This document shows positions 21,519 through 64,000 of a stretch of 64,000 bases of DNA, piece after piece (the first letter of the stretch is position 1; each line of letters begins with the position of its first letter). Where the stretch lies: the NCBI GenBank assembly GCA_001643675.2, contig LSRY02000033.1, positions 310,001 through 374,000 on the forward strand, read 5' to 3'. A program made the position numbers and the translations under genes. Origin of the DNA: Monocercomonoides exilis PA203. Taxonomy: Eukaryota; Protista; Preaxostyla. The notes under the pieces were generated by a model. It was not told the DNA's origin. It saw only the letters and a list, made by a program, of their open reading frames with translations, and did not search any database.

Positions 21519-24500
21519 TCATCTAGCGCTTTCTTTTCCGTTTGATTTTTTTTCTTTTTCAGTTTGTGAGCTTGACTCCACCATCTCATAGTCAATAGCA
21601 TCTGAGACTGTAATCATTGCAGCTCCTTTTGGAAAGCGCTGGATAAACTCCCTCTTCAGACACAAAAGAGTCGGCCTCGCATTCCCTTCTGCTGAAAGGC
21701 ATCCTTTCACAATCCCCACCATCGAACATTTCTTAGTTGCATGAATGTTCGGTCTCTCTCCATTCACAATTTTCTGTCCGGCAACTTCCGCTTCGTATTC
21801 TCCAAACGGGATCTGAAGAGTCAGGCACTCCCACAACATCATCCCGATCGAAAATGAAACTGACTCCTTTGTTGCCATCATCTTCTTATTGATTAACAAC
21901 TCTGGTGCCTTCCACCTCAGGCACTCTTTTTTGAAACTATCTTCATCCTCAAAGGCAGATGAAGGAAGTGAGTCATCATCATCATCATCACCACTGGCAG
22001 ATGTCACAACTGTTGATGAAGAGATAGATGATGAATCAGAGTCTGATGAGCAGTCAGAGTGAAGCACGATGCAAATAACCATATGTTCAGAGAATAACAC
22101 AATATGAGGACTCAAATTAGCAAGTGATGGAAGCTCATTTTCCATTTCGTCAAAGGAGTGGAGCGCAAGATTAGCCACCCAGAACAGGATCTGGGCTGCT
22201 GTCATCTCTCTTTGTTGAAGACTATCAATATCCATTTCTTTCTTCTCGTTCCTTCCGTGGAGCAACATGAATAATGAATCCCTCAGATCCACAATCAGCT
22301 TTTCATGAGGCGAGGAGCAGGCCATGGCATCCACCAGATTCGACATCGATGAGGTTGTTGGACACAAATCCTCCCCACGAACAAATGTGGATTCTGTGTC
22401 TGAAGTGTCTATTGTGGAAGTGGTTGAAGTGGATGAAATCGATGGCGATGGAGTCTGCTTTCGAATTTCCTCTTCTTCATCTTTCTCCAGCATCCATTGA
22501 GGAATCTTGTCTGAATCTCTCCCCAGAATGTATTCAGTTGATCCGCTCTCACTCAACAAATGCTCAGATGACTCTGAGTGTCCCAAGCTTTTCTCATACA
22601 CCCTCTTCTTGATCCTCTCTTCATTCTTCTTCTCAGCCTCCCTCTCAGCCCTCCTCCACTGAGCCTCGGGTGACATCTCCATCGTCACCATCTCAAACGC
22701 CTTCGGATCCTTCCTCATTGTGTCTTCCACAATTATCTCCAATTCCTTTGTTCGTCTTTTTTGTTTCCTCCACCGAACAGCAAGAACAATTGATACAATT
22801 AAAATGATCAAAAGCAACACAACCAGCATAACAATTACAATCAATGCCCATGATGATTTTCCTTCTTTTCCTCCTTCAACCAAATTATCATTTCCAGTCT
22901 TCGATTCTGTTTTATTCTTCAGAATAACAAACTCAGTTGAAGATGGATTAATGGCATCCCCAAATAGAATGCAACTGTAAACATCTGCAGTGTCTGGTGC
23001 ATCTGAAATCACTGTTGCTTGTATTTTGCCGATTGTGCTGTTCTCAGCCACAAAGCCGTCTTCGTGGAAATCGTGCTTGTCGATCAGCTCCACATCACCG
23101 ATGGCTGTGATGATGCGGAAGGACAGATTGCAGGGGAGGAGCAGGGTTCCTCTGAAGGTCAGCACAGCTTCATTGCCTTCTATGCTTGTGTCGATCGCTT
23201 GGAGGGTTGGTATGAAAAACGGAGATGGCCTTTCAGCAGCCAAGCCAGACAAAGTGCATCCGTCGCTGAGGATCCAAAGAGACGTGTTGTCCTTCAATCC
23301 ATCACCGCCTTTCAGACTGACTACATCAAGCAACCCAGAATTGGCACAAAATATATTTCTTCTAGAGGAAGGATATTGATTGATTGAGGGATTGTTATTG
23401 GATAACTCTCCTTTTTCAATAGACGCATTTCCACCAAAAATGGATAGGCCTCCATTTGGTGATTTTGAAATAAAAGACTCGTCAATGGAAATGGAGCTGT
23501 TTTTTGAGTCAATTAACGATCCATTCCATTTGCAGATTTCATCTCTGCCATTGAATATGAATAAATTGTGAGAGCTGTTGTTGGATGCCTTCCCTTCAAA
23601 CTGACATGATTTAATATTAACTTTAAAACAGTTTGAGAGCACAACCATTTCCCCAAGCTTCATTTCACTTGAAAGACAATCAGAAAATGTGCAATTTGAC
23701 AAACTGAGTTGGTAATTAGGCAAGCGGCAGTTGAGGCAAGAGGCAGAACCTGATGAAGTTATTCTTTTCAGTTTGATAAGAGATAATTCAATAGAATATT
23801 CATCATTTGTTGGCCCTGATAGATAATCACTTTCCATCTCAATGAAAGAACCACTCTGTACGACGCAATCTGACGCTTCCACTTTCTCGATTGATCCATT
23901 CATCTTCTTCAGATATATTGAACTTATCGCAGTGCGTACTTTTTCCAAATAGAGCTGCTGCAGTTGAATCCTTCCTCCTTCGCACTCAACGGTTCTCGTG
24001 CAATTCAGATTCTTCATCTTTATTTCCTCCAAAATGAGCACTCCGTATGTGGCTGAAATAAGTTTCGGAACAACCGGTGCTCTATCTGCTTCCCCGCAGA
24101 ATTCACACGAAACAAGTGAAACTTGCCCAGAAGTGATGAAAAATACGGATGAATGAAGCGATGTGAAGTCAGCTGCCAGTTTGAAGCTTACGCTTTCTAT
24201 CAGCACATTATCCTCAATGAAAATTACATATTCGCGAGTCTTGCTCAGAGATTGTCCAAATGTCACGTTGACATTCTCTCTTCCGAGTGATTTCACCTCC
24301 ATCTTCGCAAAGTCGCACTCCCGCTCGATCTCACTGCATCCATCAATCAGTAGTCGTGCTGCATAATCAATTATCATATGCTCCAGCCCTTGTCCCACAG
24401 TCACGCATGGATGATCCACTTTCCCGCATTGCCGTCCATTTGTTCCGTTCTTCTCTGCCAGTGATGACACAATGATTGTGCTTTGTTGGTATATTGTCAC

Positions 24501-27500
24501 AAACTCTATCAGATCCACTGGAACATAATTTTCCTCGTCAATCCCGTAGATCGCGTCAAACCTGTTGTATACCTCCGGGCGCAGATCAAGCAAAAATTGA
24601 GTTTCATTGATTTGTTCTGCAATCTTCCAGCACTCCACAAACACATCTCTTCCTTTCCATGCTCCATTTCCTCTGAATTCACATCCTTTGAATATAAAAT
24701 TCAGCGACGCTTGTCCCTCAGCCTTCACATACACTCCGCCGCCTCTTCCAATCGCGGGGGAGCAGCCACAATTAGTAATTTTGCTGTTGTTCATTTCAAA
24801 CCTCCCGCTGCTCCCCAGCATCATCAGCACAACTCCTCCTTTTTCTGACATCTCCGATCGACACGTGTCAAACTCTGAGCCATTTATCTCCAGCGCCCAC
24901 GAGCTCATAAAACTGCTTCCAAATACACTTGCTCCATTGAACGATGCAGTTACTCTTTTAAAAACATTCCCATTCATCTCAATTGTTGGTTGTTCGTTCC
25001 TTTCTGATGCACTTCCATCCACATATTGAATTATCCCTCCATTGGCTGTCACATTTTCCATTGTGATGTACTTCAACACACAGCAGCATCCGCTCCAGAT
25101 TTCAAAAAGAGCGGAATCAAAAGCTATGTTGCACGTGTCAAAACCACGAATTTCCAAAGATCCGCTTTTAATTGCAGCAAATTTCATATCTGAGAAGTAT
25201 GCTGAATTGTTCGAACTTAGAGAACAACCTGATATTGACAAAGCTCCGCTTTTGCTGCACATGACAGTGCATGCGGTATCTGCCAGCGTTGAGTCAAGAA
25301 ATATATCAATAGATGTGAATGACAAACTCCAAGAATTTGAGAAGAATCCTTCTGCAATCTCTTCGATATTTGGCTTCTTCAGGATAAGTTTGGCTTTTTC
25401 CAATTCTTCTAAGTCCGTTTGAACGGCTGAGACAGAAAAGTTTGATAGCTTAAAAGTATTTTCCAAAATTGACGAATGTTCAACAAACAATTCCTTTGTT
25501 TCGGCATTCGTGTCTATTTGCTTCATCCCTTTCCAGAATGTTTCACACGGATCGTCTTCCGTCCCACATCGTTTCACATCGCTTCCTCTACTCGATACAT
25601 AAATCATATTCGAACTGTATTCGATCAAAAACCGCATTAAGTCAGTATTTTCAAACTCGCTGTCTGTCCCAACAAAAGCATTTCCGTTCTCCGCAAACTG
25701 CAAATAATTGAAGTAAAATGTTGTATTTGTTACAGATTCGTTTAGTTCCGTCGCTCTGATAAAAAGATTCGTTCCAGCAAAGGCTCTGTTATCCAAAAAC
25801 GTTGCGTCCTTCAGTGTAAATGGTTGGATATTGTTAGCTGAAATGCTGTCAATAAACATAAAGCCTCCAAATCCAGAGGATTCTGAACAAGCACATATTG
25901 TCAAATCACATTTCTGCAAAGAAAGTGTATGAGTTGATGAAAGATAACATGCAACAGCACCTCCTTCTAAGCCATTTGGGGTTTCTATTCCACTGAACGA
26001 ACATTCTGTTGCAGAAAATGATGACTCTATCAAAAATGGTACAGCAGTAAAGCTCTTCGCATTCACGTTGCACAAGATCATGTGCACAAATCCTCCAACA
26101 GAATGAATCAGATAAAACTTGCATTCAACATTTGAACTTGAAGGATGAGCAACAGCAGCAGAAGAAGAATCGAAAGTGAAGGAACAGTTATTTATAGAAA
26201 GACCTTTTTCTGAAGAAGGCATTGACAAAAGCAGCCCAGCTTGCCCAGAACTGAAGAAAGATGGAAGAGAGAAAACGATACGCTCGAATTCCAAGTTATC
26301 ACTGTTCATAAAAACAGCTTCAGCAAAGTTCTCAGAAATTGATGAAGAAATGGAGAGCGTGCTTTTTTTACTAATGTCTGGTGAAGCAATCGTAAACGAT
26401 GATAAATCAAACAAATGATCAACACGCGTTCTTTCAGAAATGCTCAGCTTCTTTTGATCAGCATCCGCCAGGATGTTCTGAAAGCCTCTCCAAAATGAGC
26501 TGCAAGGATAGCGCTCATTTCCGCATCCAATCATATCGTATCCACTCGGGGACACTTGCACAGATGGTGAATGATATTGAACCAAAAACAAATAAAGATC
26601 ATGCACAGATTCACAGAAATAATTCCGATCATATCCCATCATCTCTGCAATCCTCTCCCCTGTCTCGTTTATCAGCATCATCTGAAAAGTAGTTGGGATT
26701 ACTGTCGCATTCAAATTGTCGCAAACCAAAAACATATCCTTTCCAAGCTCTGCCGAATTGCTAATGAATGTAATATCTCCAAAGAGGCAATCGCTACTCG
26801 TTCCTTCTGGTAGCAAAAGATAAACCCCTCCACCTTTTCCAGTGTTTTCATTCATTCCGCTGTTCGTGATGCTCGCATTTGTCACTGAAAATCGTCCAGT
26901 TACAGTGAGACTGCACCTCACAGCTCCTCCTTCACTTGCTCCTGACTTGCAGTTATCGAAAATACATCCATCAGCAACCTCAACTTTTTCGCAATTTGCA
27001 ACATTCACCAGAGAGCTATCTGCCTTCACAAACGTCAATTCGGAGCTTTCAATTTGCACGCTCCCTCCGCTCAAAGAGATTATCCCGCTACCACCAGAAA
27101 ACGCAACGTTGCTGAGTAGCACTTTCGTCACTTGAATGTATCCCTCTTTCCCTCTGATGATCCACATGTTTGTCTGTTCTTCCTCCGCAGATGTTCCACC
27201 GAGCTGGCAGTTATCGATATACAGCTTTCCTCCATCAACTGATATCAATTCTCCAATGCTTGATGTTAATGGCAAACTGAACTTCAAGCACGAGAGCATC
27301 AGCGATACAGAGCTAGTCTCCATTTTCAAAACAAGTCCTCCACTTGCTTCAACTGAAAATAAAGATTTGCTCGTTGGAGACTGCCCGCGAATCGTCAGAG
27401 ACAATCCATTTCGATCCAAAATCTCTCTCAAACAGCACGAGTCAACAACACGGACCGTTGTCTGATCCGTTCTCATCTTATTGAATCCAAACATTAGGTC

Positions 27501-30500
27501 CATGCACGGTTCTTGATCATCTCCACATCTCCCGTCACTGCTTCCTCCACTCGAAATGTACACTGTATTTAGAATTGGAGGAAACAGATAATATAGCACT
27601 GACCGATTGATCACAGCATTGATCTCGGAATCCACCACCCATTTGTTCTCTTCTTCCTCACCTTCAAATGCAGATCCTTCCCATTGCTGGTTCGTAATCA
27701 TATCCCTCGGTGAAGTGCACACAAGAAATACATCCTTTCCCTTCCATGCTTTGTTTCCCTCAAACAAGATTTGCTTCATTGCATACTTCACCCCACTTTC
27801 CTCGAGCTTCAAATAAATCCCCCCTCCAACTCCCACACTTTCATTTACGCAGCATCCTTTCACAGTGTTATTCGACATTGTTAATGTTCCACTGTTTTCT
27901 ACCTCCATATTCAATCCTCCACCATAAGTATTCTCTGATTCTTTGCAAACACATTGCTCCAATGTGCAATTCCATACAGTCATGGTTTTCCCTCCTTTTA
28001 TCGCACCCTCGGTTGCACCTCCATTCCCTTGTTTTCTTTGTACGCTTTTGAGAGTTGTACTGTTCATGTTAATAGTTGCTGAATCGATAACCTCAATAAA
28101 GCTGCTTTCTTCTTGATTCATTCCGTTAACCTGCGAATTCCTTATTTCCAGAGATGCTCCGTTGCACACTTTAATTGCAGCATTTGCAAATTGTGTTGTG
28201 ACGTCTGTCCAATCCATGTTTTCGCAGATGCAGCTCGCCTCGATTCCTTCCATCACAAACACTGAACGAGTGCTGAATGTCAATCCATTCAGCGCAAATT
28301 GTCTAAAACTCATACAGCCTTTCGATACAATGCCAATTGATATGCCAATTAGATTTGAGTCGGAGGCAAACGAGCAATCTGTCAATGTTAAATTCTTCTC
28401 GTAGCAGTGGAAAGCAGATTCCCAATTAACAGCAAATGAAGAAGGAAGCAAAAAGCACATCCCGCTAAACGAACAGTCTTTGCTTGTTCTGATGATGCTC
28501 CCGCTCGCTCCGCTGATACCTTCAGAAATTCTAACTTGTACGCCTGTCTGCTCCACCGTAAATGTGGTTGGTTGTTCGTCAATCGCAAGTGCTCGTTCAA
28601 ATGCAAACGGTGGAAGAAGATAAAATTGCCGTTCTCTGTTTCCAAATCGAAGCGGAATCGCAAACTCGATGGAAGCGCATGCGCTATCCGAAAAACCACA
28701 GCCAGAGTAATCATGGCCATCACTTCCAGCAACATATACAGTTCCATTAAATGTTCTAAGATATGTGACTAAAGGAATAGAATACGACTCTGCAGTTGTT
28801 GATCGTTCGAATCCTTCCATTGCCCGAAAGTCTGATTCGTTGAAATCAATTTCAAAATTTTCCTTCGTAACAATTTGCGATAGATTATATCCGTCCACAA
28901 AAATGTTGTTTCCTATTGAAGCAGAACATTCAGAAAAAGTTGTTCCCTTAAGTTCAAGATCTGCTCCATTGATATCCTCTACATACAAATAAATACCCCC
29001 GCCCAATCCTCCGCTTCCTCCCACTTTTTGAGACGTGCATGATATTAATGAAGTTCCAACTGCACCGTTCTCGGTCTGAATTATCTTGATCGAAGAATCT
29101 GCTTTCGTTCTCAGTGCCATTCCCCCGCCGTTTCCGCTGCCTGTGACGCATCCATTCATCGATCCTCCTTTAATTTGGAAGCTTTTCCCTGTACCAACAA
29201 CACCTTCGATGCCTCCTCCGCTCCCACTTTGTCTCAGTACACCCAAAAATGTTGAGTTATTCAGCACCAAATTGCATCCTTCAGAGAAAGTGATTACCGC
29301 TTTTGAGGCAAAGACGATAGGATTAATAGTTGTCCCCTCAATATTTGCACTTCCTCCTCTCAATACAAAAAGCGACTCTTCAAGAGAGTTTGCTTCCGTA
29401 TTTCCAGAGTCAACAGAAATATTGCAATTTTGCAAAGTTATTGTTCCTGTCGAAGAGAGCAAAAAAAGAGAAGTTGCCTTCGATGATTTTTCTGTATCGT
29501 GGACTATGTCGAAAGATGAAATTTTCAGAGATCCTGTAGACACAGCAAACAAAGCACCAGAAGACATCGATGAAGCCACTGTGACTTTATCATTTCCAGC
29601 ATTATTAAATTCAATTCTTGCTGATCCGATTTCGTAATTGCTCTCAACATACGATGAAGGGTCAACTGAAATTATAGTTGGAGAGTTATTTGAGAGATTA
29701 ATAACATTTCTTGTAAAAGAAATAGTCTTACACTTTCTCAGGTTCAATCCGCACGCGTGTTGGTCGATTCCTTCTTTAAAATTCACTTTGATTCCTTCAA
29801 AATACCCAAATTTCATCAATCCAATCACATTGTTTGTATCATTCATTATTCTTTGCGCTTTGTCTGTCATTGTCCGACATTCAACAAACCATTCAGGTGC
29901 AAATATCTTGGTCCAGTTTTGGAGAAATCCAACATCATGCGCTCCTTGTGTCGCTGTGTTGTTGTCAAAGAAACAGAATTTGATAGATGCTGGTTCAAAT
30001 GTATGATTTCCACCATCTTTGGAAAAAAGAATCGCGCCACCTTTTTGATTGCTTTGACAATTTGAAAATTCACAATCAGATATAGTTATTAACCCCGTGT
30101 CTCCTATCCACATTGCACCTCCGCCATATGTGCTATATGAAGCAATTTCTGAACAATTATGAAAGAAGCACTGAACTATTTCACCTGGAGAATTAAGATT
30201 AAGGTGAATTGCTCCTCCGTCACGATATGCAGTTGAATTGTGAAAGGTACATTTCTTAATCAAATTTCTGGTCACATAATTACTGCTAATTGATGCACCA
30301 CATGCAGAAGGTTCGGTGCAATTACAAAATTTTGATTCAGTGATTGAAATATATGAATCTTTCTCTAACTTTATTGACATACCAGTACAATTTGCAAATA
30401 AACATTTATTAATAGTAACATTTATTGCATTTTCTATGTAAAGTGCGTCGGCTTCAGCAACTGTAAATAAGCAATCTTCAAATTGAATTGTATTGTTTGT

Positions 30501-31337: not shown

Positions 31338-31616
31338 TTTTGACCCAAAAATTGGATCGTTAAATTATGTGTTTTTTGGAATATGTTATGGTTATAAATA
31401 TACAAACCATAATTTTTAATTTTTTCGGTTCTGAAACTGTGAAATCTTTTCAACTAACAAATAAAGTTAAATTAGAATTTTAAAAAGCATAGAAATTATC
31501 ATAAACACAAATATGCATCACTTTTTGATAATGAATAATATTCTTTGCTTATCTTTTGTCTCTAGCTGTTCATTATTAGGATTAATAATAATATCGATAA
31601 AGAACTGACAAATACC

Positions 31617-31617
<1 letters not shown>

Positions 31618-31677
<60 letters not shown>

Positions 31678-37828: not shown

Positions 37829-38340
37829 TAAAGTGCAGTGTTTAACAATCAATTTTCAAGACTTTCAGCAAAGAACTGAAGAATCAAAATATTTTATCAT
37901 CAGCATGAAACTTTAATATTCTTTTTATTGGAAATATTTTTTCGTTTTTAAGCAATATTTCTCTTTGAAGAATATTGAAGAGCATTTATCGAACTTGATG
38001 AAATGAATTCCTTTATTAAAATTTGCAATTGTTTGATGAAGTTCAAATTGCATAATATTGAAATTGCACAACAACAACAACAAACAAACAAACAAACAAA
38101 AAAAAAAGTGTTTTTTCGAAAATTTGAAATTATTTAGTATATGTATATTGATCAACTATATGTAAAGTATATTTATGATCAAAAGTGTTTTTTTATAGAC
38201 TTTGTTGTGTTGGTGGTTATCAATCATAAAATTTTAATTATCCTATGAAATTTATATGAAAGAGATTGCTTTGCTGAGGATCTTTTGACTGCTTTTCAAT
38301 TTTATGGGGTTTGTTTTCACATAAATAAAAATTGCTTTTT

Positions 38341-47114: not shown

Positions 47115-47512
47115 AGGCTTGGGGCTTCTGCAGTTTTTATTTAAAAATACCGCTTTTTCTTTCTTCTTTTTCTCGTTTTCTTTTTCTTTTTCTTTTTAAA
47201 TAGAAAAAAGTGGGACTGAAAACGAATACAATTAACACTTCACTTTTAAATCGTCTGAGACATTTTCTAATCTCAACTTTTTTTCATTTCACAGCAGATT
47301 AAATACCAAAAAAATTCACTTCTCGTCTTCAGTGAAATTTTTGTGTTGAAAAAAAATTTTTTTTTATAAAAAATAAAATGCAAAAAATAATTAAATAAAC
47401 TTTTTTAAAAAAATGATTCAATGTTGGGAAATTTGAATGATAATTCAAAATTTGCAATGAGTTGTAAAAGTGAGACATATAAGATAAAAGAAGAAAACGA
47501 AAGAAGAACACG

Positions 47513-47559
<47 letters not shown>
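47513..47559. repeat. Poly-A run (47 nt)
   Basis: Directly visible. It lies ~22 nt past the stop of the minus-strand gene, so it would be poly-U in that 3' UTR. Confidence 0.95.
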
Positions 47560-47560
<1 letters not shown>

Positions 47561-47581
47561 ATCATCTCACAAAATAATACA

Positions 47582-49641: not shown

Positions 49642-49750
49642 TGCATTTGTTAACAAATAACAGATGCAAAATTTTTAAATGAGTTGTTTCTGTTGCAATT
49701 AAACTTAAAGAAATATTCCAGATCACAAAAGAGCCCAAAAACAATTGTTT
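49642..49750. promoter_or_regulatory. Putative bidirectional promoter (109 bp) between the FANCE-like gene and TEL2
   Basis: Divergent predicted start codons at 49641(-) and 49751(+). Confidence 0.45.
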
Positions 49751-52700: not shown

Positions 52701-54510
52701 AGCCATAATTGATGGGGAAAATGTTGAAGAAGTCAAAAAAGAGGAAAATTTTGAATGCGGATCATCAGATGTGTCCGATTCATCATCAACTGAAAATGAA
52801 CTGGATGATCTGGCCTTGCCACAGGAATCATCTTCACTTCTGTCAGCAGCTGCATGGCCTGAAGGAAATTCAATATTTTTAGCAGATGCTGTCGACGCGC
52901 TGACTGCGTCTGTGTCAAACACCGATGCAAGGCTGTTGAAAATTACGCTTCAGCGCCTTCCGCAGCTTATCGCCTCGTCACCGCCAGATCTGTTGGAGAA
53001 TGCATGTGTTGCTGCACGTACCGTTTGCGGATTGGTAAATCTTTTTTCATTGGATGATTTTGATTTGATGAGAGTTGATGTACTTGTAAGATTGATTGCT
53101 GAGGTTGGCCGCCCTGTCATAATGTATGTATTTTTCATATTTAAATATTTGAAAGGTTAAATTTGAAAATTTTGTTTGCCGATGATACACTTTACTCATG
53201 GTCGTTTGCTCCTTTGAATGTTTCCAAGATCACTATCTGAGATATTTTACGGCTATGGCATTTCCACAAGCAGTCGAGTGGTGATAGCTGAATCATTTGC
53301 AGAAAGCGCGTTGGAGCTATCCGGAAATAAAACTACACGATCAGTTCATCAGCAATCAACCGCAAAAGAAAAAGAGGAATCTCAAACAAATAGACACTGC
53401 AATTCCATTCAAAAAGACTCCAATCGTTTCAAAGAGAATTCTGCAGATAATGATGCAAAGGCAATACATGAAAAAGAAAAAGAGCATTATGAGCCTGAAC
53501 TTTCGGAGCATAAAACAATACGTTGGGGATCTTTTCGAATGTTTGGAAATATTTCTTCTTTTTTTGCTCCAAAAAAATAAAGATGATTTCGCTTATTAAT
53601 ATAATTTTCAATACTTCATTCATTATTGCAACATGTCAATTTGTGCAATCTGCTTTCATTTCCATTCATTCTTAATTTAGAAAGCCATGCACCATATTAA
53701 ATCGATTTTCTCGTCTTGCTGCTTGTGCATTTTATTCATTGCTTTCATCAGTAGAGGCACAATCACCATCTTTAATGACTCATAGTACGCAAGCTTCAGT
53801 TATAAATGAGATGCTGAGCCCAACTGAAATGCATCAAATATCACAGCCAACGAACCCTGCAACGTTCACTGTTAGGGAATCACTTTCACTATTTGGAGAT
53901 GAAAGCTTTTTAGGAAGTATTTTGTTGAACACTCTTGCCACTATTATTTTATGTACCGGGCCAATTCCAATTTTTTCCAAGATGTGCAAAGATCTTCTAT
54001 CATTTTGCTGGACACTTAGATCGCACAAACATCCTCTCATGAGAAAGGCGGTATGTTTACTCTCAAAACAATTTCTTTCTTTCTTTCTTTTTTTTTTCTT
54101 TGTCTCATTTTTCAACTTGTATGGATAATTAACTGTAAAAATATACAATTATTTTTTCATTTATCGCTTTTCTATTTTTATTCAAAGATTATATGCTGCT
54201 TACGCGCTTGCTTTCTTTCACCTTTATTGAATAATGACTCTACGCTTATTTTATCAACTTTTGAAAATGACATTAGGGAAGCATCTATTTTTTTGCAAGG
54301 TTTGATTATTGTTTAAAGAGTTTATTTTTATTTTTATTTTTATTTTTTCAAATTTTCATTTTTTTTATTCCTTTCAAAAAATATTTAAAAGACATCTGTG
54401 AAAGTGAAACAGACCCAGATTGTAGAGTGCTTGCAACAGATTTTCAACAGTTTCTGCTTGGCAGATTGAAAGCATCTTCATTTGAACTTCCAATTGATAA
54501 TATTCTTTAA
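49751..54510 (+). CDS. TEL2: Telomere length regulation protein TEL2/TELO2 homolog (TTT complex), 7 exons
   Basis: Introns 50230-50290, 50713(or 50725)-50803, 53124-53228, 53541-53680, 54051-54187 and 54300-54391. TEL2-domain pattern FLADAVDAL...LPQLI...DDFDLMRVDVLVRL...EIFYGYGISTSSRVVIAESFAESALELS, plus KTIRWG, NRFSRLAACAFYSLL, LRSHKHPLMRKA and ETDPDCRVLA. Confidence 0.8.
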
Positions 54511-55206: not shown

Positions 55207-58200
55207 TTACTCTTTGTTCGACAGCATTGGCGCATAAAGCCCATCATCTTTAGCCTTTTTGGAAAGCATCGGTTCGTAGCTGCTGTCTTTACCTCCTTTC
55301 ATTTGAACACTTGTTCCTCCATAGCTCTTACTTCTTCCTCCAGACTTTCTCTTCTTTACAACACAAATAATCACAACAGCTACAGCTACACCAACAACAG
55401 CCAAGACACCAATAATAATACCAGCAATTGCTCCTCCTGATAATTTTGGCTTGTTCTTTGGCTTTTCAGGATCGTCATGTGGAGGTGGTGGAGGAGGAGG
55501 TGGTGGGATCACTTTCTTTCTAAGTTGAACATCGTTTGTTGCTTTATTATCACCAAATGTTAATCTCACAACAACTTCGTCAGCATCACCAATATCGACT
55601 AACTTCGTATCTACATCAGCTTTTGCAACAGTATCGCTGACAGAATCAGTGAATCCATTAACATGTGTCCATGTACCAATCTTCTCACCTGTTTTCTGTG
55701 CAACATCGAATCCAAGTCCACAAGGAATAAGCTTGGTACCCGTAAATGTAATTGTCGTCTTTGCTCCATCGAAGCTTGGAGATGTAGCTGATTTCAATGT
55801 TGGTACGAAGAATAATGAATCCTTCTGAGGCAATCCCTCTCCTGTGATGTCACATCCATCATTAACCATCCAAAAGTCGCTATCACCTGTTCCATCACTT
55901 CCAGCTTGCAAACTATCGATCACGATCTTTGTGTCTGAGTTTGTTCCTTGGCAAATAATGTTATGTCTGAGAGAAGGATATTTCTGTTGCTTAGGATTAT
56001 TGTTGAGGAATTTCACATTCACAAGTTGAGCTGAACTTTTCTCAACAACTGATATGCCTCCAGAAATAGAACTGACAAATGAAACACTTTCAAATTTCGC
56101 TGATGACGCTGATTGTAATCTCACTAAAGAAGCATCACTCTTCCACACGCAAACTCCATCTACAGCAGCTTCGTCCAAACTCTCTTCTTCAAGTTCATTC
56201 CAGGAAGTGGTTGGAGTTGACAATAATCCTGTGAAAATTGTGTTTTTAACATTAGTCTTCACAAGAGAAGATTTAACTGTAAGCATTGAAAACTCTATGT
56301 CATTGGTAGCAGCGTTAGTTGGTCCAAACTCTGCATTTTCAATATCAATAGAAGCGCGAACTTCCGATCCAATAACAATGGCTTTAACTCTTGTTCCTGT
56401 ACCAATAAATTGAGGAGGATATTTAACCTTGATGTTCTTCATTTTGAATGAAGAAATCGGGTGGAACACAGATTCATAAGATGTTGTAAATCTATCAAAC
56501 ACTTGAACATCCGCCAATGAATCATCTGTAGATGTTAAGACAAATGGATGAGTTGTTGTTGCTTCAATATGCAAAAGGAATTGCTTTTTGATCTTCACAG
56601 TTTGTTCATCAGTTGAAGTAATATGTTCTTGAATGAGATCCCAAGAATTGCAAGGATGTTGAATAGATCCGCAACGTTTTCCTTCCTCTGCTTCTGTCAA
56701 AGATGAAAGAACAACTTCATTTGTTTTGTAAGGAATTTGATGTTTGCTTTCGTCCATTAACAAATCAGTAACTTCTTCATCCCCGACTTGTGCATTGATT
56801 AGATTTTCTTTTTCATACATATCAGACAAATCAAGATCGAACATACTATCCGTTATTTGATCCAGATCTTTAACTTTAATAAATATGTTCTTTCCAACCT
56901 TTCCTTTATTATCTTTGAAGGTAGCAAGGCTGAGCGTTACAGGAACTGTTGCAACTCCAACGCTATTATAACCTGCTTCAAAGGCAGCCTCGAGATAAAC
57001 TGCTGCTCCTTGACCTTCATTTGCATCATTCTCATTCATTTCAAATCGAGTTTCTTTAATGACAACATTTGAAGCAGCTGATGCAATTACAACTCTTAAA
57101 GCTGATCCGGTTTTTCCTGTTGATACGCATTGAACAAATGATCCTCCTTCAAGTTTCACCGAAACTGCAATTGTATCAACATAAACAACATTACTTTCTC
57201 CTGTAAGGGAAATGCTTTTGAAATCTGTATTCTTTAAAGTAAATCCGCTTGAAGTATTATTCATAAATATTAATGATTTCTCACTCATTTTAATCGACTG
57301 AATAACACAATCAGTGAACGATATGCTACCTTGATCAGCCCTAAAGATATAACTTGTAAATGCTGTTTCTGTTTTATGAGCATTGTCTGGTTTGAAAACA
57401 CAATCAATTGCTCCGAATCCTCCAGCTTCACTCACGAATACCAACGGAACTCCTCTATTTTTCTCAATTGAAGAATCGAGAACAATAGTGAATTTAGAGA
57501 ATGACAAAGACGAGGCAGCCATATTCACTAAGAACATTCCATCAGCAACATCATCACCATATGATGTGGAGAATGTTGTCTCATCCTTTGATTCTCCTAC
57601 AATACCCACAATCAATGCAAATGCGTTATTATCATCTCCACCTTTAGTACTAACAGGGCCTTTTTCATTTTTATATGTTCCCTTTACTAGCTTGGCATAA
57701 TATGGCAAACCTTCCCCAAACTTCTTAAATGCAACTTCAATAGATTTGCATCCAACTTTGCCTGTAAATCCACAATCATCTTCTTCATTTCCTCCATCAA
57801 TAGCGATTACTCTTGTAGCTTCCCCGTATGGAATGTATCCCTTTGTTTCATCATCTCCGGATTTGTGATGATGATATAAAGTATTAGCATTCTTATCAGT
57901 TGTCATAGATTTTTTGAAAAATTGAATATCAACTTTATTTTCGTTTTGATCATCAACATAAACATCAGATCCTTTTCCTGTTTTTGTATTTTTCTCGAAA
58001 TAACACAAAACATTCGTTTCTTCTGGAACTGTGTCTTTAAGAGTAATATGCATTGCACCTCCATTAGTTGCAGTGTTTTCGATAAATGAAATTCCTTTCA
58101 AAACACTAGCAGCAGGAAGAACAACCAAATTTAACGCTCCTCCATTAGCAGCAGAACATTTCTCAAATCTAGAGGAAGAAAATTGAATTTGCTCAACATC

Positions 58201-61200
58201 ATTTGCATACAGAACACCTCCTCCGCAATTGGCCGCAGAAGCTTTACACTCTGTAAATACACCTCCGGTAAATTTGATAATTGGTTTGATATCTTCGTCA
58301 GTCTCTGGGTTCTTCTTTGTTGATGCTCTAAACAAACCTCCGTTATCCTTCTTATTTTCACACTTTTTAAAGTTTCCTCCAGATACAGCAAGTGTTCCTT
58401 TAGTTTCGATAATAGCAAATGAAGGTCCATTTAATCCTACAACGTTTTCATAATTTCCACCCGCAAATGTCAATGTTCCATCAGATTCCATTGCAACAAG
58501 TGGTGAGTTTTTCATATCGATATCTTTTAATTCCATTGATACAGTCATTGAACCAAACTTTTTCGTTTTGTCTTCATCATCTTCAACGTAATAAGAAACC
58601 TTCAAAGGTGATTCATTAAATGTTAATCTTCCTGATGGAGATTCAACAACAAATGTTGAAGCTTCGATGCTTACAGTTCCACCAACAGATGAGATCAAGC
58701 AGATTTCGACTGGTTCTCCAACTTTACCTTCTTCTTGATAGAATTCACAATGGCTTACACTCAAAGAAGATCCATCTGTATACGATCCAATCAAAGCACT
58801 TGGTTTATAATTGCATACTGTATCACGGAATTTATTGGGATATGTAACATCCAAATAACTCAATGTTAAAGTCTTTTGAACAGCAAATGCTGGATCTCCT
58901 TCTTGTGCAACTTCCATTGAATCACTGAATATAAAGTCAGCAAACGCCTGTGGTTTCAAACTTGAATCAATGGTAATGTGCTCAACATAATTCCATCTTG
59001 TTGTAGGAACATTATATCCACTAACAATGCTAAATGTAACTTGTCCTACTTTTTTCTGTGCATAAGCTTTGTCAAATGTTTTGCAAGGATGGCTCTTTAA
59101 ACCACAGAAATTATCATCTTCTCCAAGACGAGAATCGACGTACACCGTATCAAAGTGGAAATTATCAAACAAATACAAGTCCACAACATTTGATTTAAAC
59201 AGAGCACAATCTTTACCTACCATTTTGTTTTGTTTTTCTGGTAAATCAATATTAATCAAAGGTTTCACAACTCTCTTAGTTAAATCATCCAAATAAACAT
59301 AAAGATCTTGTCCTTTGCTTGCCTTGTTCTCCTTATCATCTCCTTCCTCTTTTTCAAAAGATGTAATGATGATTTCAGCTGGTTTATTTTGGAAATCAAG
59401 ATAAATTGCTCCACCTGATCCCTTTGTCGTTGAGCATTCGCATGATGTAAATTTACATCCATCCCCTTCTGATTTTTCTAATCTGAAATGACCTTCAACT
59501 TCTTCTGATTTTAAGCAAATGGCACCACCAGTTGTTGATTCTCTAGCAACGCATGAATCAAATGTTGAATCAACAATCTGTACACTTAACGTTGTTTGCT
59601 TTACATCAGCATTTATAACTGAAGCTCCGTTAGAGCCAACTCTTTCAATTTTAGAAAATTCACATTTATTCAATGACAAGCCAGATTGACGTTTATCTCC
59701 TTCAGAAAGGCAAATAATTGAAGAATCTTTAAATGACATTGAATTGCATTTCATTTCTTTAATATTCAATGAACCTCCTTTAACTTCAAATAATGGAGCA
59801 AGATATTGTTCGTCTTTTTTCTCAGCATCTTTTCTCACATCAAAGTCTGTAAGTGTTGCTTCTCCACCTTCGATAGCAAACAATTTAGAGTGACGATTTC
59901 CAAGAATAGACTGATCATGAATAATAATAAATCCTTCTTGAGTAATAGAACCTCCTTTAATTGAATAAAGAACATTTTCTCCTGCGAAAGAAGTACGGAT
60001 AATTGTTGATTCTTTGCCAGCTGTTTGAACAACAATGAATTTCGCACCAACTGCAATTGTTGCTGTTTCTGAAAGCGAATCTCCTTCCATAATATGAATA
60101 GTATTTTGTGTCCAATCGCTACAATATGAAACAGCCACTCCAATTGTTCTACAGTATTTATCTTGCAGATTTTCATTAAGTCCACATGTTGGTTCATCAA
60201 ATTTGCTATCCTTGCTAACATACCTATTTCTTTGATCATCTCCAATAAAAGACTTTTTCTCTGCTCCTTCTTCAGGTTTCGCAGAAGTCACATAGTATAA
60301 ACGTGATTCGTCTTGTCTTGTGCTCATACTTTTATAGAATGGTGAATTTTGATCTTGTGTAATTGCTTCGTTATGCATATCTTTCAAATAAACATCATGA
60401 CCATGTACTGTTGCTTCGTTTTCATCAACAAATAAGCAAATAAACTTTGATGCCAAGTTAGCTATAGCTTCATATATCATATAGATTGCACCTCCATCAT
60501 CAGCACGATTATGCGCAAATGAGCATTCTGCCAATTCAACAGAAGCTGGATATCCAGAGAGATATATTGCTCCACCAAAGGCTGGATGTTCGGCTTCATC
60601 AGTTGAAAGAGCAGTGCATGCAGAAAATGAAACACGATGTAATTTCAAAGATTGTTTGATTGAAGAAATTGCAATTGCTCCACCAAAGCAATCTTTTCCT
60701 TTAACAGTACATCCTGAAAATGCTGAATCTTGATCGATAACAAGAGACCCTGAAGTTCCAGAGCAACTAATTGCTCCTCCAACTGCCTTTTCTTTCAGGG
60801 TATTGCAGCATCTGTCAAACTTGCAATTGTGAATTGTAACTGTTTCACCGTCTTTCAGAGCAAAGACTGATCCTTGAACTTTGGAAGTTATGGATTCAAA
60901 TACACAACCATTCATTTCCAATTTTGCAGGTCCAACAAGGTTAAATAATGAACCTTCATTAATCTTCACTGATCTAACAGTAACGCTTGCAAATGTCTTT
61001 ACATTGGTAGCTGTTTCAATAACAAATGCATTCTTTTCGAATACTGACTCCGTAATACCTCCAAATCTGGTGAGTGAGCAATCAGTAACACTCAAAACAC
61101 CACTTTTAGCATGGATGATTGCAAATCTCATTTCATTCGTATTACCATCTTGTTTAAATTCACATTTCGACAACGTTAGAGAAGCAGCTGTTCCTGCGGT

Positions 61201-64000
61201 TGAAATAACGCTTTCTGGCAAGAATCCACAACTAAATGTGAATTGATTTCTAAATTTAATAATAACTTTTTCAATTGTCATTGTTGCTGTATTTTGAATT
61301 GCTCCATCACCTTTAGATGCAACAGTTGTCGATGCATCAATATCAATTGTTGAATAAACATTTCCCATTTGTTCACTAGCTGTTGTGAATTTTATTCCGG
61401 CTGCATAATTCCACTTCATGGATGCATCACTTGAAACTTCATCAACAATTTCAAATGTCTGTTCTCCAACTCCATCAAATCTATTATCTGCAACGAACTT
61501 TAATGTTTTGCATGGAAGTATATAATCTCCACAATAAGTCTTGTCATCCATACCCTTTTCCATTGACGAAACATGTACATGGGACTGTTTAGTGAATGTT
61601 GTGTAATAATACCACAAATCATAAGCTTTTGGAATGAATTTATCTTTTCCAACTTTCATATTTTCTTCAGTGGATGGAACAAATTCCTGTGGAATATGTT
61701 CAGCAACAACCAAATATCTTAAATCATCGTAATCAATGTACAGATCTTTTCCAATTCCGGCATCGCACTTTGTAAATGTGACAGATTTTTCAAACTTCAC
61801 ATTTAATGATCTCGATTCAAGGTAAATCGCTCCTCCCATACCAACGGAGTTGCAGTAGCATTCTTCAAATTTAGTATTTCCTCCAAATGAGACCTTAGAA
61901 TCAGCACTATTTGCGTGTAAAGTAAAGACACCTCCTTTTTGAGAACTTGGAGATGTCACTTTTGTAAATGTTGAATCTGAAACATCAACATCCAAGGTGT
62001 ATGCATTTTCATTGTGAGAGCAAATGAATGCAGCTTCTTGTCCATTGCAGCATGTTACATCTTGTACAATGCTTTCATATATAGAAGCTTGTTGATTAAT
62101 ACCATTCAATGAAATCAATGGAACGCCTTGAGTAATAAATGATTTTATCGTGGATTTTTGAATAACCAGAATTCCATTAACAGTAAATATCGAAGTTTCG
62201 AATTTGCTCAATTTAGAATGCTTATCATCAGGCAAGATCATGCAATCCTCAATCATACAAGTACCACCATTCACATTTACCAATGTTGACTTTCTGCATT
62301 TCTCTTCCTGAGAATTATGTAAAATAGTTGCTTTTTTAATGCTCATTTCACCATTTTGTAGAACACTAAACATCACGCTTTTCTCATTTTCAAAGATGGT
62401 ATGGATTGCTGTGTTTGCAGTTCCTTTACCTTCGATTACAATTTGCTTCTTCACTTCAATTGTTTCCTTTTCTTTATCAAACACTGGAGATAATAACAAA
62501 ACTGTTCCTTGTGTCCAATCAATACTTTTTTCAACAGCAACTTTAATTGACTTGCAAGGAACTTCATTTTTAAGACCGCAATTATCATCCTCGTTCTCTT
62601 TTGATTGATCAGCATTTCTAACCTTGTCTTTCATTCCAATATATTTCGGTCTGTCATGTTCCTCTTTGCTTGATCCGTAATATTTGACTCTATTATTATC
62701 ATTTGTAGAAGTTAAACTTGGATAAAATGGTGACGATTCTCCATCTTCAGGCAAATCCGCTTGTGTATCTTCGATGTATGCATCCATTCCTTTTGGTGCA
62801 GTATTTCCTTCAAAGAATGATCTAATCTTTGACTTATCGTTCTCAGCATTTTCAGCTAACATGTAAAATGCACCTCCCTTTTGACTTGCTTTGTTACTCT
62901 TAAACTTACATAATTGAATGCTTAAAGAAGAATCAGTTGGTGTAGGAGGAATAATGTAGACTGCTCCAGCTTCATCAGAAGATGAACATGAATCAACAGT
63001 AACTGATGTCATACTGAACCTTGTTCTACAATGACAATAAATAGCACCTCCCTTTGCTTTTGTTCCCGTAACTTCGCAATGTGTAAATTCACCTCCTATA
63101 ATATCCAAAGTATTATAGAATGAATCAACTGATATTGCACCACCATGTGCAGCTTTCTTTTCCACGTCATCACCAGTTAAAGAACTTGAGCACTTACATG
63201 TTGTAAATTTGCATTGTTCAATTTTACAAACTGGTTTGTTTATGTCATCTTCCTCTCTAACAAGGTTGAGTACACCACGATTGCTCTTGCATTCAATGTT
63301 AGTAAACTCGCATTTTGAAAGTGTTGCCGTTCCACCAATTTCTATCACTGATTGAAGGAATGTGCTAGATGTTTGACCTCCAACAACACAATCTGTCATA
63401 GTCAACGAAGATCCTTTTGACTGAATAATTGCCATGATTTCAATGTTAGTATTTGATTCAAATGAAAACTTAACTTTATTTAATCTCAAGTTACCATTAG
63501 CATTAATTCTAAACACAGCAACTGCTTGATCAAAGCATAAGCCTTTGCTAAATTTAATTGGTGATTCAATAATTATATTTTCAATAGTTAATGAAGAACC
63601 GGATACAGTTAAATATCCTCCATCATCTTCACCAACGTTTGCTTGTTGCTGGCATTTAATTGTTGCAGGAGTATCTGTTTTCGTTGAAACAATCTTTAAG
63701 CCTTTTGTAAATACATATGCTTGCTCTAATGTGAATGATTTACCCGATTCAATATGAATTACAGTATTAGCTGTTCCATGTGTCATAGCATAAGGCAACG
63801 TCAAGCAAGGATAGTATTCTGGTCCACACCAAATATCGTCTCTTGGATTAGTTGACATCACATAAATGTCATCGTCTACGTAATTTTCAATTAGAGAATA
63901 TAAATCAATTGGAACAACATTGAAAATATTTCCTGAATCTAAGCCAACCATAACATTATGTGTTTTACTGAAATATCCTGCTCCAAATACATCTTCTGTT
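55207..64000 (-). CDS. Large (>2,900 aa, 5' end outside the window) beta-helix/PMP-like single-pass surface protein with a short YxPM tail
   Basis: Open to the window edge. GGAI/FxxN repeats, seven CGxxxx(P)C modules, the family membrane-proximal module (YPSLRHNIIC, FFVPTL), a poly-Pro stalk, TM GAIAGIIIGVLAVVGVAVAVVIICVV, and tail SYEPMLS...LYAPMLS. Confidence 0.85.
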   Translation of the reverse strand, partial: TEDVFGAGYFSKTHNVMVGLDSGNIFNVVPIDLYSLIENYVDDDIYVMSTNPRDDIWCGPEYYPCLTLPYAMTHGTANTVIHIESGKSFTLEQAYVFTKGLKIVSTKTDTPATIKCQQQANVGEDDGGYLTVSGSSLTIENIIIESPIKFSKGLCFDQAVAVFRINANGNLRLNKVKFSFESNTNIEIMAIIQSKGSSLTMTDCVVGGQTSSTFLQSVIEIGGTATLSKCEFTNIECKSNRGVLNLVREEDDINKPVCKIEQCKFTTCKCSSSLTGDDVEKKAAHGGAISVDSFYNTLDIIGGEFTHCEVTGTKAKGGAIYCHCRTRFSMTSVTVDSCSSSDEAGAVYIIPPTPTDSSLSIQLCKFKSNKASQKGGAFYMLAENAENDKSKIRSFFEGNTAPKGMDAYIEDTQADLPEDGESSPFYPSLTSTNDNNRVKYYGSSKEEHDRPKYIGMKDKVRNADQSKENEDDNCGLKNEVPCKSIKVAVEKSIDWTQGTVLLLSPVFDKEKETIEVKKQIVIEGKGTANTAIHTIFENEKSVMFSVLQNGEMSIKKATILHNSQEEKCRKSTLVNVNGGTCMIEDCMILPDDKHSKLSKFETSIFTVNGILVIQKSTIKSFITQGVPLISLNGINQQASIYESIVQDVTCCNGQEAAFICSHNENAYTLDVDVSDSTFTKVTSPSSQKGGVFTLHANSADSKVSFGGNTKFEECYCNSVGMGGAIYLESRSLNVKFEKSVTFTKCDAGIGKDLYIDYDDLRYLVVAEHIPQEFVPSTEENMKVGKDKFIPKAYDLWYYYTTFTKQSHVHVSSMEKGMDDKTYCGDYILPCKTLKFVADNRFDGVGEQTFEIVDEVSSDASMKWNYAAGIKFTTASEQMGNVYSTIDIDASTTVASKGDGAIQNTATMTIEKVIIKFRNQFTFSCGFLPESVISTAGTAASLTLSKCEFKQDGNTNEMRFAIIHAKSGVLSVTDCSLTRFGGITESVFEKNAFVIETATNVKTFASVTVRSVKINEGSLFNLVGPAKLEMNGCVFESITSKVQGSVFALKDGETVTIHNCKFDRCCNTLKEKAVGGAISCSGTSGSLVIDQDSAFSGCTVKGKDCFGGAIAISSIKQSLKLHRVSFSACTALSTDEAEHPAFGGAIYLSGYPASVELAECSFAHNRADDGGAIYMIYEAIANLASKFICLFVDENEATVHGHDVYLKDMHNEAITQDQNSPFYKSMSTRQDESRLYYVTSAKPEEGAEKKSFIGDDQRNRYVSKDSKFDEPTCGLNENLQDKYCRTIGVAVSYCSDWTQNTIHIMEGDSLSETATIAVGAKFIVVQTAGKESTIIRTSFAGENVLYSIKGGSITQEGFIIIHDQSILGNRHSKLFAIEGGEATLTDFDVRKDAEKKDEQYLAPLFEVKGGSLNIKEMKCNSMSFKDSSIICLSEGDKRQSGLSLNKCEFSKIERVGSNGASVINADVKQTTLSVQIVDSTFDSCVARESTTGGAICLKSEEVEGHFRLEKSEGDGCKFTSCECSTTKGSGGAIYLDFQNKPAEIIITSFEKEEGDDKENKASKGQDLYVYLDDLTKRVVKPLINIDLPEKQNKMVGKDCALFKSNVVDLYLFDNFHFDTVYVDSRLGEDDNFCGLKSHPCKTFDKAYAQKKVGQVTFSIVSGYNVPTTRWNYVEHITIDSSLKPQAFADFIFSDSMEVAQEGDPAFAVQKTLTLSYLDVTYPNKFRDTVCNYKPSALIGSYTDGSSLSVSHCEFYQEEGKVGEPVEICLISSVGGTVSIEASTFVVESPSGRLTFNESPLKVSYYVEDDEDKTKKFGSMTVSMELKDIDMKNSPLVAMESDGTLTFAGGNYENVVGLNGPSFAIIETKGTLAVSGGNFKKCENKKDNGGLFRASTKKNPETDEDIKPIIKFTGGVFTECKASAANCGGGVLYANDVEQIQFSSSRFEKCSAANGGALNLVVLPAASVLKGISFIENTATNGGAMHITLKDTVPEETNVLCYFEKNTKTGKGSDVYVDDQNENKVDIQFFKKSMTTDKNANTLYHHHKSGDDETKGYIPYGEATRVIAIDGGNEEDDCGFTGKVGCKSIEVAFKKFGEGLPYYAKLVKGTYKNEKGPVSTKGGDDNNAFALIVGIVGESKDETTFSTSYGDDVADGMFLVNMAASSLSFSKFTIVLDSSIEKNRGVPLVFVSEAGGFGAIDCVFKPDNAHKTETAFTSYIFRADQGSISFTDCVIQSIKMSEKSLIFMNNTSSGFTLKNTDFKSISLTGESNVVYVDTIAVSVKLEGGSFVQCVSTGKTGSALRVVIASAASNVVIKETRFEMNENDANEGQGAAVYLEAAFEAGYNSVGVATVPVTLSLATFKDNKGKVGKNIFIKVKDLDQITDSMFDLDLSDMYEKENLINAQVGDEEVTDLLMDESKHQIPYKTNEVVLSSLTEAEEGKRCGSIQHPCNSWDLIQEHITSTDEQTVKIKKQFLLHIEATTTHPFVLTSTDDSLADVQVFDRFTTSYESVFHPISSFKMKNIKVKYPPQFIGTGTRVKAIVIGSEVRASIDIENAEFGPTNAATNDIEFSMLTVKSSLVKTNVKNTIFTGLLSTPTTSWNELEEESLDEAAVDGVCVWKSDASLVRLQSASSAKFESVSFVSSISGGISVVEKSSAQLVNVKFLNNNPKQQKYPSLRHNIICQGTNSDTKIVIDSLQAGSDGTGDSDFWMVNDGCDITGEGLPQKDSLFFVPTLKSATSPSFDGAKTTITFTGTKLIPCGLGFDVAQKTGEKIGTWTHVNGFTDSVSDTVAKADVDTKLVDIGDADEVVVRLTFGDNKATNDVQLRKKVIPPPPPPPPPHDDPEKPKNKPKLSGGAIAGIIIGVLAVVGVAVAVVIICVVKKRKSGGRSKSYGGTSVQMKGGKDSSYEPMLSKKAKDDGLYAPMLSNKE

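Follow-up and report, generated by a model that had tools for sequence, protein, structure and literature searches.

Giant beta-helix proteins with kinase-remnant or short tails: a probable recombining surface-protein superfamily in the oxymonad Monocercomonoides exilis

This study concerns a 64,000-nucleotide stretch of contig LSRY02000033.1 of Monocercomonoides exilis PA203 (hereafter the window; positions count from its first letter), and in particular three loci at 21519-31337 (locus 1), 35060-37828 (locus 2) and 55207-63951 (locus 3). M. exilis is an oxymonad, a gut protist regarded as the first known mitochondrion-less eukaryote. Our results make it probable that these loci, of which two are live and one is dead, belong to a superfamily of giant beta-helix surface proteins, which recombine and carry either pseudokinase or short tails. 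As judged from sequence comparisons, ectodomain lineages swapped the membrane span and tail on at least seven occasions, breaking in a conserved juxtamembrane stretch. An earlier note, made from the sequence alone, had interpreted the loci as modular receptors. Its observation was confirmed and this interpretation is partly supported; its ideas about paired receptors and the sensing of bacteria are speculation.

Architecture of the three loci

Locus 1 can be followed from its start to its stop codon (aa, amino acids; pLDDT, predicted local distance difference test score; Ig, immunoglobulin):

21519-31337, minus strand: locus 1, uninterrupted single open reading frame of 3,272 aa, type I membrane protein with class A pseudokinase tail
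31278-31337, minus: putative signal peptide (aa 1-20), a hydrophobic N-terminus read from the sequence without a predictor
29994-30446, minus: right-handed beta-helix (aa 298-448; Pfam PF13229, E 5.7e-8, 33 bits against a cut-off of 25.9)
27504-27527, 26502-26525, 25545-25568 and 24405-24428, minus: four CG-x-PC caps (aa 1271, 1605, 1924 and 2304)
23244-23531, minus: N-terminal half of the membrane-proximal module, terminal beta-solenoid rungs (AlphaFold2 model residues 9-104 and alignment)
22908-23219, minus: C-terminal half of the module, IPT/TIG-like Ig beta-sandwich stalk (AlphaFold2 residues 113-216, pLDDT ~85-95)
22776-22850, minus: membrane span (aa 2830-2854; hydropathy peak of 3.8 over 19 aa)
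21585-22337, minus: class A pseudokinase fold, C-lobe with a small N-lobe remnant (AlphaFold2 tail residues 150-400, mostly pLDDT >90)
22053-22115, minus: degenerate catalytic-loop and DFG region, reading L-S-P-H... and ...H-S-D
21900-21917, minus: R-W-K-A-P-E, inside the class A pseudokinase fold

The caps head beta-helix units of ~320-380 aa each. The earlier note had reported shared CG..PC caps and GGA modules in the three loci, and this was borne out. The motif CG-x(3-9)-PC occurs four times in locus 1, once in locus 2 and five times in the part of locus 3 that lies in the window, against a shuffled mean of 0.0. GGA[ILVM] occurs 5 times in locus 1 and 12 times in the window part of locus 3 (shuffled means 0.3 and 0.2). 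The motifs are thus present in all three loci as the note gave them, but locus 2 is a 5'-truncated pseudogene (see the section on exchange) and locus 3 is the end of a 7,937-aa protein:

55207-63951, minus, continuing past the window end at 64000: locus 3, C-terminal 2,914 aa of the annotated 7,937-aa protein P0220
63805, 62554, 61510, 59083 and 56650, minus: caps within the window (motif)
55507-56169, minus: divergent copy of the module (27-30% identical to locus 1; best paralogue 38%)
55480-55506, minus: stalk of nine prolines
55357-55434, minus: membrane span (sequence)
55267-55278, minus: YEPM in the 51-aa tail
55225-55236, minus: YAPM in the 51-aa tail

The open frame of locus 3 has 7,940 codons and extends outside the window. 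P0220 ends in the locus 3 sequence, has a hydrophobic, signal-peptide-like start and carries 11 caps over its full length; from locus 1 to full P0220, cap counts run from 4 to 11, with shuffles giving no more than 0.1. Full P0220 also has 35 GGA[ILVM] motifs (0.6 in shuffles) and 44 F-x-x-N motifs (25.3 in shuffles). The right-handed beta-helix profile PF13229 gave no match in locus 3.

The closest analogues of locus 3 are the Pmp-like proteins of trichomonads (Handrich 2019, PMC6701047), which share the GGA[ILV] and F-x-x-N repeats, the beta-helical ectodomain, a C-terminal membrane span that replaces the bacterial autotransporter, and endocytic motifs in a short tail. We treat this as a resemblance and do not claim homology. 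Unlike the trichomonad proteins, the locus 3 protein is ~7,900 aa long, has an IPT-like module, lacks the A-T-P-I-T-K motif and stays below the Chlam_PMP cut-off (PF02415, 17 bits against 20.6, with no match in P0220 aa 1-4900). Membership of the Pmp family was rejected on the last two grounds. The C-termini consist of one membrane span and a cytoplasmic tail, and no beta-barrel of the chlamydial autotransporter type was found in them.

The second shared element in the earlier note was a membrane-proximal module (aa ~2602-2810 in locus 1), and its existence was upheld. It can be aligned over ~215 aa across the three loci, with identities to locus 1 of 30% for locus 3 and of 39-51% for the two pieces of locus 2. 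An alignment of 39 family members has 13 invariant columns, including W10, Y61, S63, N67, C70, W94, C100, P141 and C142, and four conserved cysteines. In the AlphaFold2 model based on this alignment (pLDDT 81.8; predicted template modelling score 0.75), residues 9-104 form beta-solenoid rungs, which finish at the invariant Y-P-S-x-R-R-N-I-x-C stretch. In locus 1 this half carries the GG, F-x-x-N and Y-P-S-x-R-R-N-I-x-C motifs. Because of the GG and F-x-x-N motifs, we regard these rungs as the last coils of the beta-helix.

Residues 113-216 form a beta-sandwich in the model. In an exhaustive structural comparison, its best matches were the IPT domain of plexin C1 (Z 9.3) and the IPT/TIG domains of NF-kB, NFAT, EBF and Met (Z 8-9), at a root-mean-square deviation (rmsd) of ~3 A over 80-95 residues and an identity of ~10%, where a Z of ~9 is slightly above the noise level stated by the tool. 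The IPT/TIG profile PF01833 had no Pfam match in the module, and the likeness is at fold level only. Searches of the ESM Atlas with the module returned nothing specific (by fold, template modelling (TM) scores <0.5; by features, at most 0.82). The earlier note had not recognised the module as a named domain and had proposed AlphaFold and Foldseek as a check. This stands insofar as no named sequence family matches, but the fold types are known ones: according to the model, the module is a composite of ordinary folds, the last beta-helix rungs and an IPT/TIG-like Ig domain.

Plexin/Met-type receptors and the insulin receptor likewise place membrane-proximal IPT/TIG or fibronectin type III Ig-like domains below a larger ligand-binding head, and the L domain of the insulin receptor is also a beta-solenoid that is followed by fibronectin type III. 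The likeness is confined to the fold (Z at most 9.3, identity ~10%, TM by query 0.26, no sequence family match). Kinship with the insulin-receptor ectodomain was considered and rejected, since the Foldseek match (TM by query ~0.26, rmsd ~17 A) reflects the solenoid-then-sandwich layout only. In the Blattamonas protein BLNAU_16772 (P0123), the last 330 aa contain the module and then a further CG-x-PC cap and beta-helix unit, without a membrane span. The module may also occur internally in this protein, or the gene model may be wrong.

Kinase-like tails as C-lobe remnants

The earlier note described the tails of loci 1 and 2 as degenerate kinase C-lobes. This is what the profiles indicate, with PF07714 covering only positions 163-256 of 258 in the 421-aa tail of locus 1 and positions 156-256 of 258 in locus 2, but the two tails belong to different classes (A and B) that are only 17-22% identical. 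Genuine kinases of the M. exilis genome match PF07714 over positions 2-258, whereas members of the family match only from ~155-160 on. Homologues in Blattamonas show the same C-lobe-only coverage. An HRD-type motif is absent from all of 269 module-bearing proteins. Among 120 tails from the first protein search, both HRD and VAIK were absent from all, and DFG and the glycine-rich G-x-G-x-x-G motif were found only sporadically.

The AlphaFold2 model of the tail has a confident fold over tail residues 150-400. It runs from two strands and a short helix through alpha-E to a catalytic-loop/beta7-8 region with replaced catalytic residues, then to a disordered Ser/Asp-rich insert at the position of the activation loop, and finally from alpha-EF to alpha-I. 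Beyond the two strands there is no N-lobe in the model. The first 66 tail residues of class A are modelled as long helices. Foldseek matched the tail to RIPK1, BTK, FGFR, BRAF and the pseudokinase ILK (E ~1e-7), with a TM by target of ~0.5, which therefore corresponds to half a kinase. A profile search of PDB with the tail found TAK1, TNNI3K, EGFR and EphA2 (E at most 1e-11), aligned only from APE to alpha-I.

The residues that are invariant over class A, class B and Blattamonas (R-W-x-A-P-E, F311, G314 and E319 of alpha-F, and R370 of alpha-H/I) are the structural core of the C-lobe. Since the N-lobe, HRD and DFG are lost while alpha-E to alpha-I are kept, the tails are predicted, from sequence and model, to be unable to phosphorylate. 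Between random class A pairs, the upstream ectodomain is 33% identical, the module 58% and the tail 73%. As the dead state is common to two genera and the tail is the best conserved part, we conclude that the remnant is under selection.

Receptor pseudokinases are known from animals (HER3, RYK, ROR, PTK7), plants (BIR2-type) and some transmembrane kinases of Entamoeba, and likewise have a single membrane pass and a dead domain that serves as a scaffold. The fold of the M. exilis tail resembles kinases of the tyrosine kinase-like (TKL) and tyrosine kinase (TK) groups, including ILK. However, receptor pseudokinases keep the whole bilobal domain, whereas the M. exilis tails are essentially without N-lobe. 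Further differences are the ectodomain, which in M. exilis is a multi-kilobase beta-helix chain, and the family size of ~900 copies.

Near-complete kinase domains (profile positions 4-28 to 254-256) were also observed in M. exilis, in giant open frames of 2,375-6,905 aa:

C52:244016-244684, C23:935922-936590, C47:332771-333481, C52:99224-99973 and C14:510284-510988: near-complete kinase domains (PF07714 profile)

Exchange of membrane span and tail

Tails were compared in 178 C-termini, taken from 60 genomic loci (L numbers) and 124 database proteins (P numbers), duplicates included. The great majority (154 rows, including locus 1) have class A tails of ~410-450 aa. Class B tails, of the type of locus 2 and ~300-310 aa long, make up 14 rows, among which 13 modules are distinct; E-G-M-T-S-Q-I-P, the marker of this class, occurs at 72 genomic sites on at least 35 contigs and not once in the control. 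A lysine/glutamate-rich tail of ~310 aa, without a kinase part, is found in four rows (L057 and P0068, which have the same sequence, P0079 and P0059). The only element that L057 and P0059 have in common with class B is a juxtamembrane motif, and no such match was seen for P0079. We considered whether this tail is a frameshifted class B tail and rejected the idea: tblastn of class A and B tails against the L057 DNA recovered the juxtamembrane motif only, in the same frame. Together with the short tails discussed below, these classes agree with the earlier view of one ectodomain scaffold with different cytoplasmic outputs.

The tails of classes A and B form one clade each, with 99% support for either, and class B tails are 69-93% identical to one another. 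The modules tell a different story. In the module tree, which has 152 rows, nine changes are required to account for the 13 of class B, at least seven of which are forced by well-supported branches, and the approximately unbiased (AU) test rejected class B monophyly (log-likelihood difference 646, p 9.7e-60). Identity between class B and class A modules reaches 85%. A class B protein, P0053, is 54-94% identical to the class A protein P0033 over ~2,300 aa of ectodomain and only 8-28% identical from the membrane span on. The same collapse of identity at the membrane span was found in five full-length pairs, P0053/P0033 among them. The exchange junction is located in the extracellular juxtamembrane stretch downstream of the module. 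Full-length comparisons further show that the ectodomains are mosaics of segments, whose nearest relatives differ by segment. Four class B genes (L022, L047, L051 and L053) stand in the genome as continuous open frames of 2,200-2,600 aa; the exchange signal is therefore no artefact of gene models.

Locus 2 preserves such a mosaic in disabled form:

~35060-37828, plus strand: locus 2, 5'-truncated pseudogene with only the last beta-helix unit left and a class B pseudokinase tail
35344-35367, plus: single CG-x-PC cap (motif)
~36148-36780, plus: module (alignment)
36791-36860, plus: mosaic junction (blastn against the 60 genomic family loci)
~36839-36910, plus: membrane span (sequence)
37055-37077, plus: class B marker E-G-M-T-S-Q-I-P (motif)
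37499-37792, plus: class B kinase C-lobe remnant (Pfam PF07714, E 8.6e-9, positions 156-256 of 258)

Upstream of the junction (35088-36791), the nearest of the 60 loci is the class A gene L056 (81%); downstream of it (36860-37852), the nearest is the class B gene L022 (93.8%), which lies on the same contig. In-frame stops stand at 35149, 35197, 35530 and 36376, the last a TGA where the family keeps a Gly codon, and a frameshift lies in an A-run at ~36790-36825.

The exchange demonstrated is thus one between the two pseudokinase classes, with the breakpoint at the membrane span, and not the one between pseudokinase and tyrosine tails that the earlier note had suggested. Its description of locus 3 was accurate: a stalk of nine prolines and a 51-aa tail with two YxPM motifs. 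However, a paired-tyrosine tail as a conserved output type did not survive comparison with the closest paralogue, MONOS_9641 (P0238, L032). This protein has one Y-L-P-I-L-S at the matching position and lacks the second tyrosine motif, so the pairing is not conserved. A reading of the locus 3 tail as an immunoreceptor tyrosine-based activation motif (ITAM) was also rejected; the spacing of 10 residues fits, but the motif ends in Met and is present just once in the nearest paralogue. Candidate Y-x-x-hydrophobic signals, as read from the sequences, are YEPM and YAPM in locus 3, YLPI in MONOS_9641 and YVAI in L038.

Short or other non-kinase tails are found in locus 3, MONOS_9641, L038/P0223, MONOS_330 and MONOS_465, and longer, low-complexity ones in MONOS_360, P0214 and P0225. 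In the module tree, locus 3 pairs with MONOS_9641/L032 at 97% support, and these rows, L038 and the Blattamonas rows all fall outside the clade of the pseudokinase-tailed M. exilis rows (98% support). The short-tail genes would accordingly be deep, divergent lineages in which tail type follows phylogeny, and no transfer of a tyrosine tail onto a pseudokinase-type ectodomain was seen among the sampled tails. Strict agreement between tail type and ectodomain phylogeny, which the earlier note had proposed to check, is therefore broken for classes A and B but holds for the short-tail lineages.

The two groups also differ in N-glycosylation sequons. These are depleted in the short-tail giants of ~7,800 aa (16 against 83.6 +/- 8.3 expected in P0220; 1 against 53.2 +/- 6.1 in P0238), and the locus 3 frame at 55435-63951 (2,839 aa in the window) has only two. 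Pseudokinase-tailed ectodomains are enriched (54 in locus 1 against 35.0 +/- 5.0 expected), which supports their passage through the endoplasmic reticulum.

Family size, alternative explanations and proposed function

The M. exilis genome comprises 82.3 Mb in 101 contigs. A six-frame search with the locus 1 module gave 1,460 first-look candidates, and all 150 matches that were scored had E at most 5e-66, mostly in open frames of 2,500-4,400 aa. A degenerate DNA pattern for R-W-K/Q-A-P-E occurs at 934 genomic sites and at none in the reversed control. We estimate the family at roughly 900 copies. All named protein matches are from M. exilis or Blattamonas nauphoetae; of 10 names looked up from the best 150 of 792 profile-search matches, none was from outside the oxymonads.

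According to passages of the genome paper, the family is the largest gene family of M. exilis, annotated as 'protein tyrosine kinases' with 332 models, 320 of them TKL-like (Karnkowska 2019, PMC6759080). According to passages of a later paper, it overlaps 28.9 Mb of 'unclassified repeats' flagged by RepeatModeler (Treitli 2021, PMC8767320). In these passages of both papers, we found no description of the beta-helix ectodomain, the module, the catalytic loss, the tail classes or the recombination, and a literature search found no searchable paper that pairs 'oxymonad' with 'pseudokinase'. As far as these passages go, the count and map of the family have been published, and its architecture and dead-kinase nature are new here.

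Contigs from four RNA libraries of one study are identical, with 0 differences, to gene-specific parts of the locus 1 ectodomain. Their summed depth at 21794-22778, the conserved class A tail, is ~5-70x that of the gene-specific ectodomain. This would be expected if contigs of many paralogues pile up over the tail, and it is no measure of expression.

Many family copies form inverted pairs that are separated by a few kb and score identically, and one partner is often truncated. These could be real palindromic duplications or assembly artefacts. Examples from the genome searches are:

C9:1600650 (minus) and C9:1618289 (plus): inverted pair
C55:442448 (plus) and C55:450057 (minus): inverted pair
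C1:2704 (plus) and C1:7151 (minus): inverted pair

Within the window, housekeeping genes are interspersed among the family members at 38854-53160, and a further open reading frame lies near its start:

38854-42132: trehalose-6-phosphate synthase/phosphatase fusion
42582-47114: Bms1/Tsr1-type GTPase
50818-53160: Tel2-like protein
4123-7824, plus: open reading frame of 1,233 aa, possibly another cysteine-rich surface protein (weak Ephrin_rec_like and NCD3G matches, E ~4e-5)

The anatomy, as observed or modelled, consists of a putative signal peptide, cap-headed right-handed beta-helix units with Pmp-like GGA and F-x-x-N repeats, the module, one membrane span and a cytoplasmic output. The module contributes the last helix rungs and an IPT/TIG-like Ig stalk with four conserved cysteines. 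Class A, class B (at least 72 copies), lysine/glutamate-rich and short or other non-kinase tails occur as outputs on this scaffold, and the family evolves by segmental recombination. We propose that the proteins would be anchored in the plasma membrane and expose the beta-helix chain on the cell exterior, where the variable ectodomain may bind external ligands such as glycans, bacteria or the host surface. The most likely role of the dead-kinase tail would be that of a docking scaffold for cytosolic partners. By analogy with the tails of trichomonad Pmp-like and BspA proteins (PMC6701047), the short Y-x-P-hydrophobic-L-S tail could be a Y-x-x-hydrophobic adaptor signal for endocytic sorting. 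Exchange would most likely start in the conserved end of the module and proceed by ectopic homologous recombination.

Several points weigh against this reading. The C-termini sampled are ~180 of ~900, ranked by similarity to two queries. The trees come from a quick search and include long branches (locus 3, L032, L038 and Blattamonas), which leaves the placement of the short-tail genes and the root unsure. The giant frames with near-complete kinase domains might carry the same module. The RNA contigs stem from one study and may derive from contaminating DNA. Relatives outside the oxymonads may exist, as only the best 150 of 792 matches were listed. Finally, the anatomy, dead-kinase state, conservation gradient, mosaicism and cassette exchange were observed or modelled, while the roles in ligand binding, partner docking and endocytosis, like the surface location, are inferred.

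A more far-reaching version, to which we give little credence, is that classes A and B differ in function as outputs and that recombination of the cassette onto shared ectodomains is selected. If true, M. exilis would hold a protist counterpart to the paired receptors of immune systems. In addition, the two glycan-free giants of ~7,800 aa with the Y-x-P-hydrophobic-L-S tail would be a separate class of uptake receptors. Variant surface families that recombine, and immune paired receptors such as KIR and Ly49, resemble the M. exilis family in their mosaic ectodomains, conserved tail and segmental exchange, and in placing similar ectodomains on alternative tails. Switching, exclusive expression and opposing signals are not evidenced in M. 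exilis.

A paired-receptor system in the immunological sense, with near-identical ectodomains on tails of opposing output (class A against class B, or pseudokinase against tyrosine), is unlikely. Class A and B genes do have ectodomains that are 54-94% identical, L022 and its nearest class A partner share a contig, and the tyrosine motifs of locus 3 stand at an ITAM-like spacing of 10 residues. However, differing outputs of the two classes are not evidenced, both are C-lobe remnants with identical invariant residues, and the A/B partners examined are not near-identical and mostly lie on separate contigs. The tyrosine motif ends in Met instead of Leu/Ile and is single in the closest paralogue, and the short-tail ectodomains have no close pseudokinase-tailed counterpart (best module identity 38%).

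It is very unlikely that the copies are mostly selfish or decaying repeats without cellular function. The passages on RepeatModeler's unclassified repeats (PMC8767320), the truncated or disabled copies (locus 2, L014, L025 and L043, for example) and the many inverted pairs would fit such a view. Against it stand the stop-free frames of 2,500-4,400 aa in most scored copies, the steep rise in conservation from ectodomain to tail, an architecture and dead-kinase state kept in a second genus, sequons selected for in one class and against in another, and the coverage of locus 1 by RNA-library contigs.

That no exchange took place, with classes A and B diverging together with their ectodomains and the mixing due to tree error, chimeric gene models or misassembly, is highly improbable and already largely refuted. 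The module tree was quick-searched and has many unresolved forks, and the P-numbered proteins are annotated gene models. Yet the AU test speaks strongly against a single class B clade, modules up to 85% identical sit on tails that are 17-22% identical, the collapse falls exactly at the membrane span in five full-length pairs, four class B genes are intact in the genome itself, and the class B marker recurs at its 72 sites. Least credible of all is that these proteins are active receptor tyrosine or TKL kinases, as the genome-paper annotation of 332 and 320 models (PMC6759080) and the above-cut-off PF07714 score might suggest, because the match is limited to profile positions 155-258 where genuine kinases of the same genome match 2-258, HRD is absent from all 269 proteins and VAIK from all 120 tails, DFG and the glycine-rich motif are sporadic, and the modelled tail has only two strands of an N-lobe.

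A recombining superfamily of beta-helix proteins with pseudokinase or short tails hence remains the probable explanation. By a rough estimate, it takes up ~5-9% of the genome of this model amitochondriate eukaryote and accounts for much of the 35% of 'unclassified repeats'. The label 'tyrosine kinases' would be misleading, since the M. exilis kinome appears inflated by ~900 proteins that, from their sequences and models, are predicted to be unable to act as enzymes. The combination is unusual in that a hypervariable beta-helix ectodomain, subject to recombination, is joined to a conserved Ig-like stalk and to dead-kinase cassettes that are exchangeable and already present in Blattamonas. It is a tractable system for two questions: how the surface of a gut commensal becomes diverse, and how one half of a kinase may function as a signalling scaffold.

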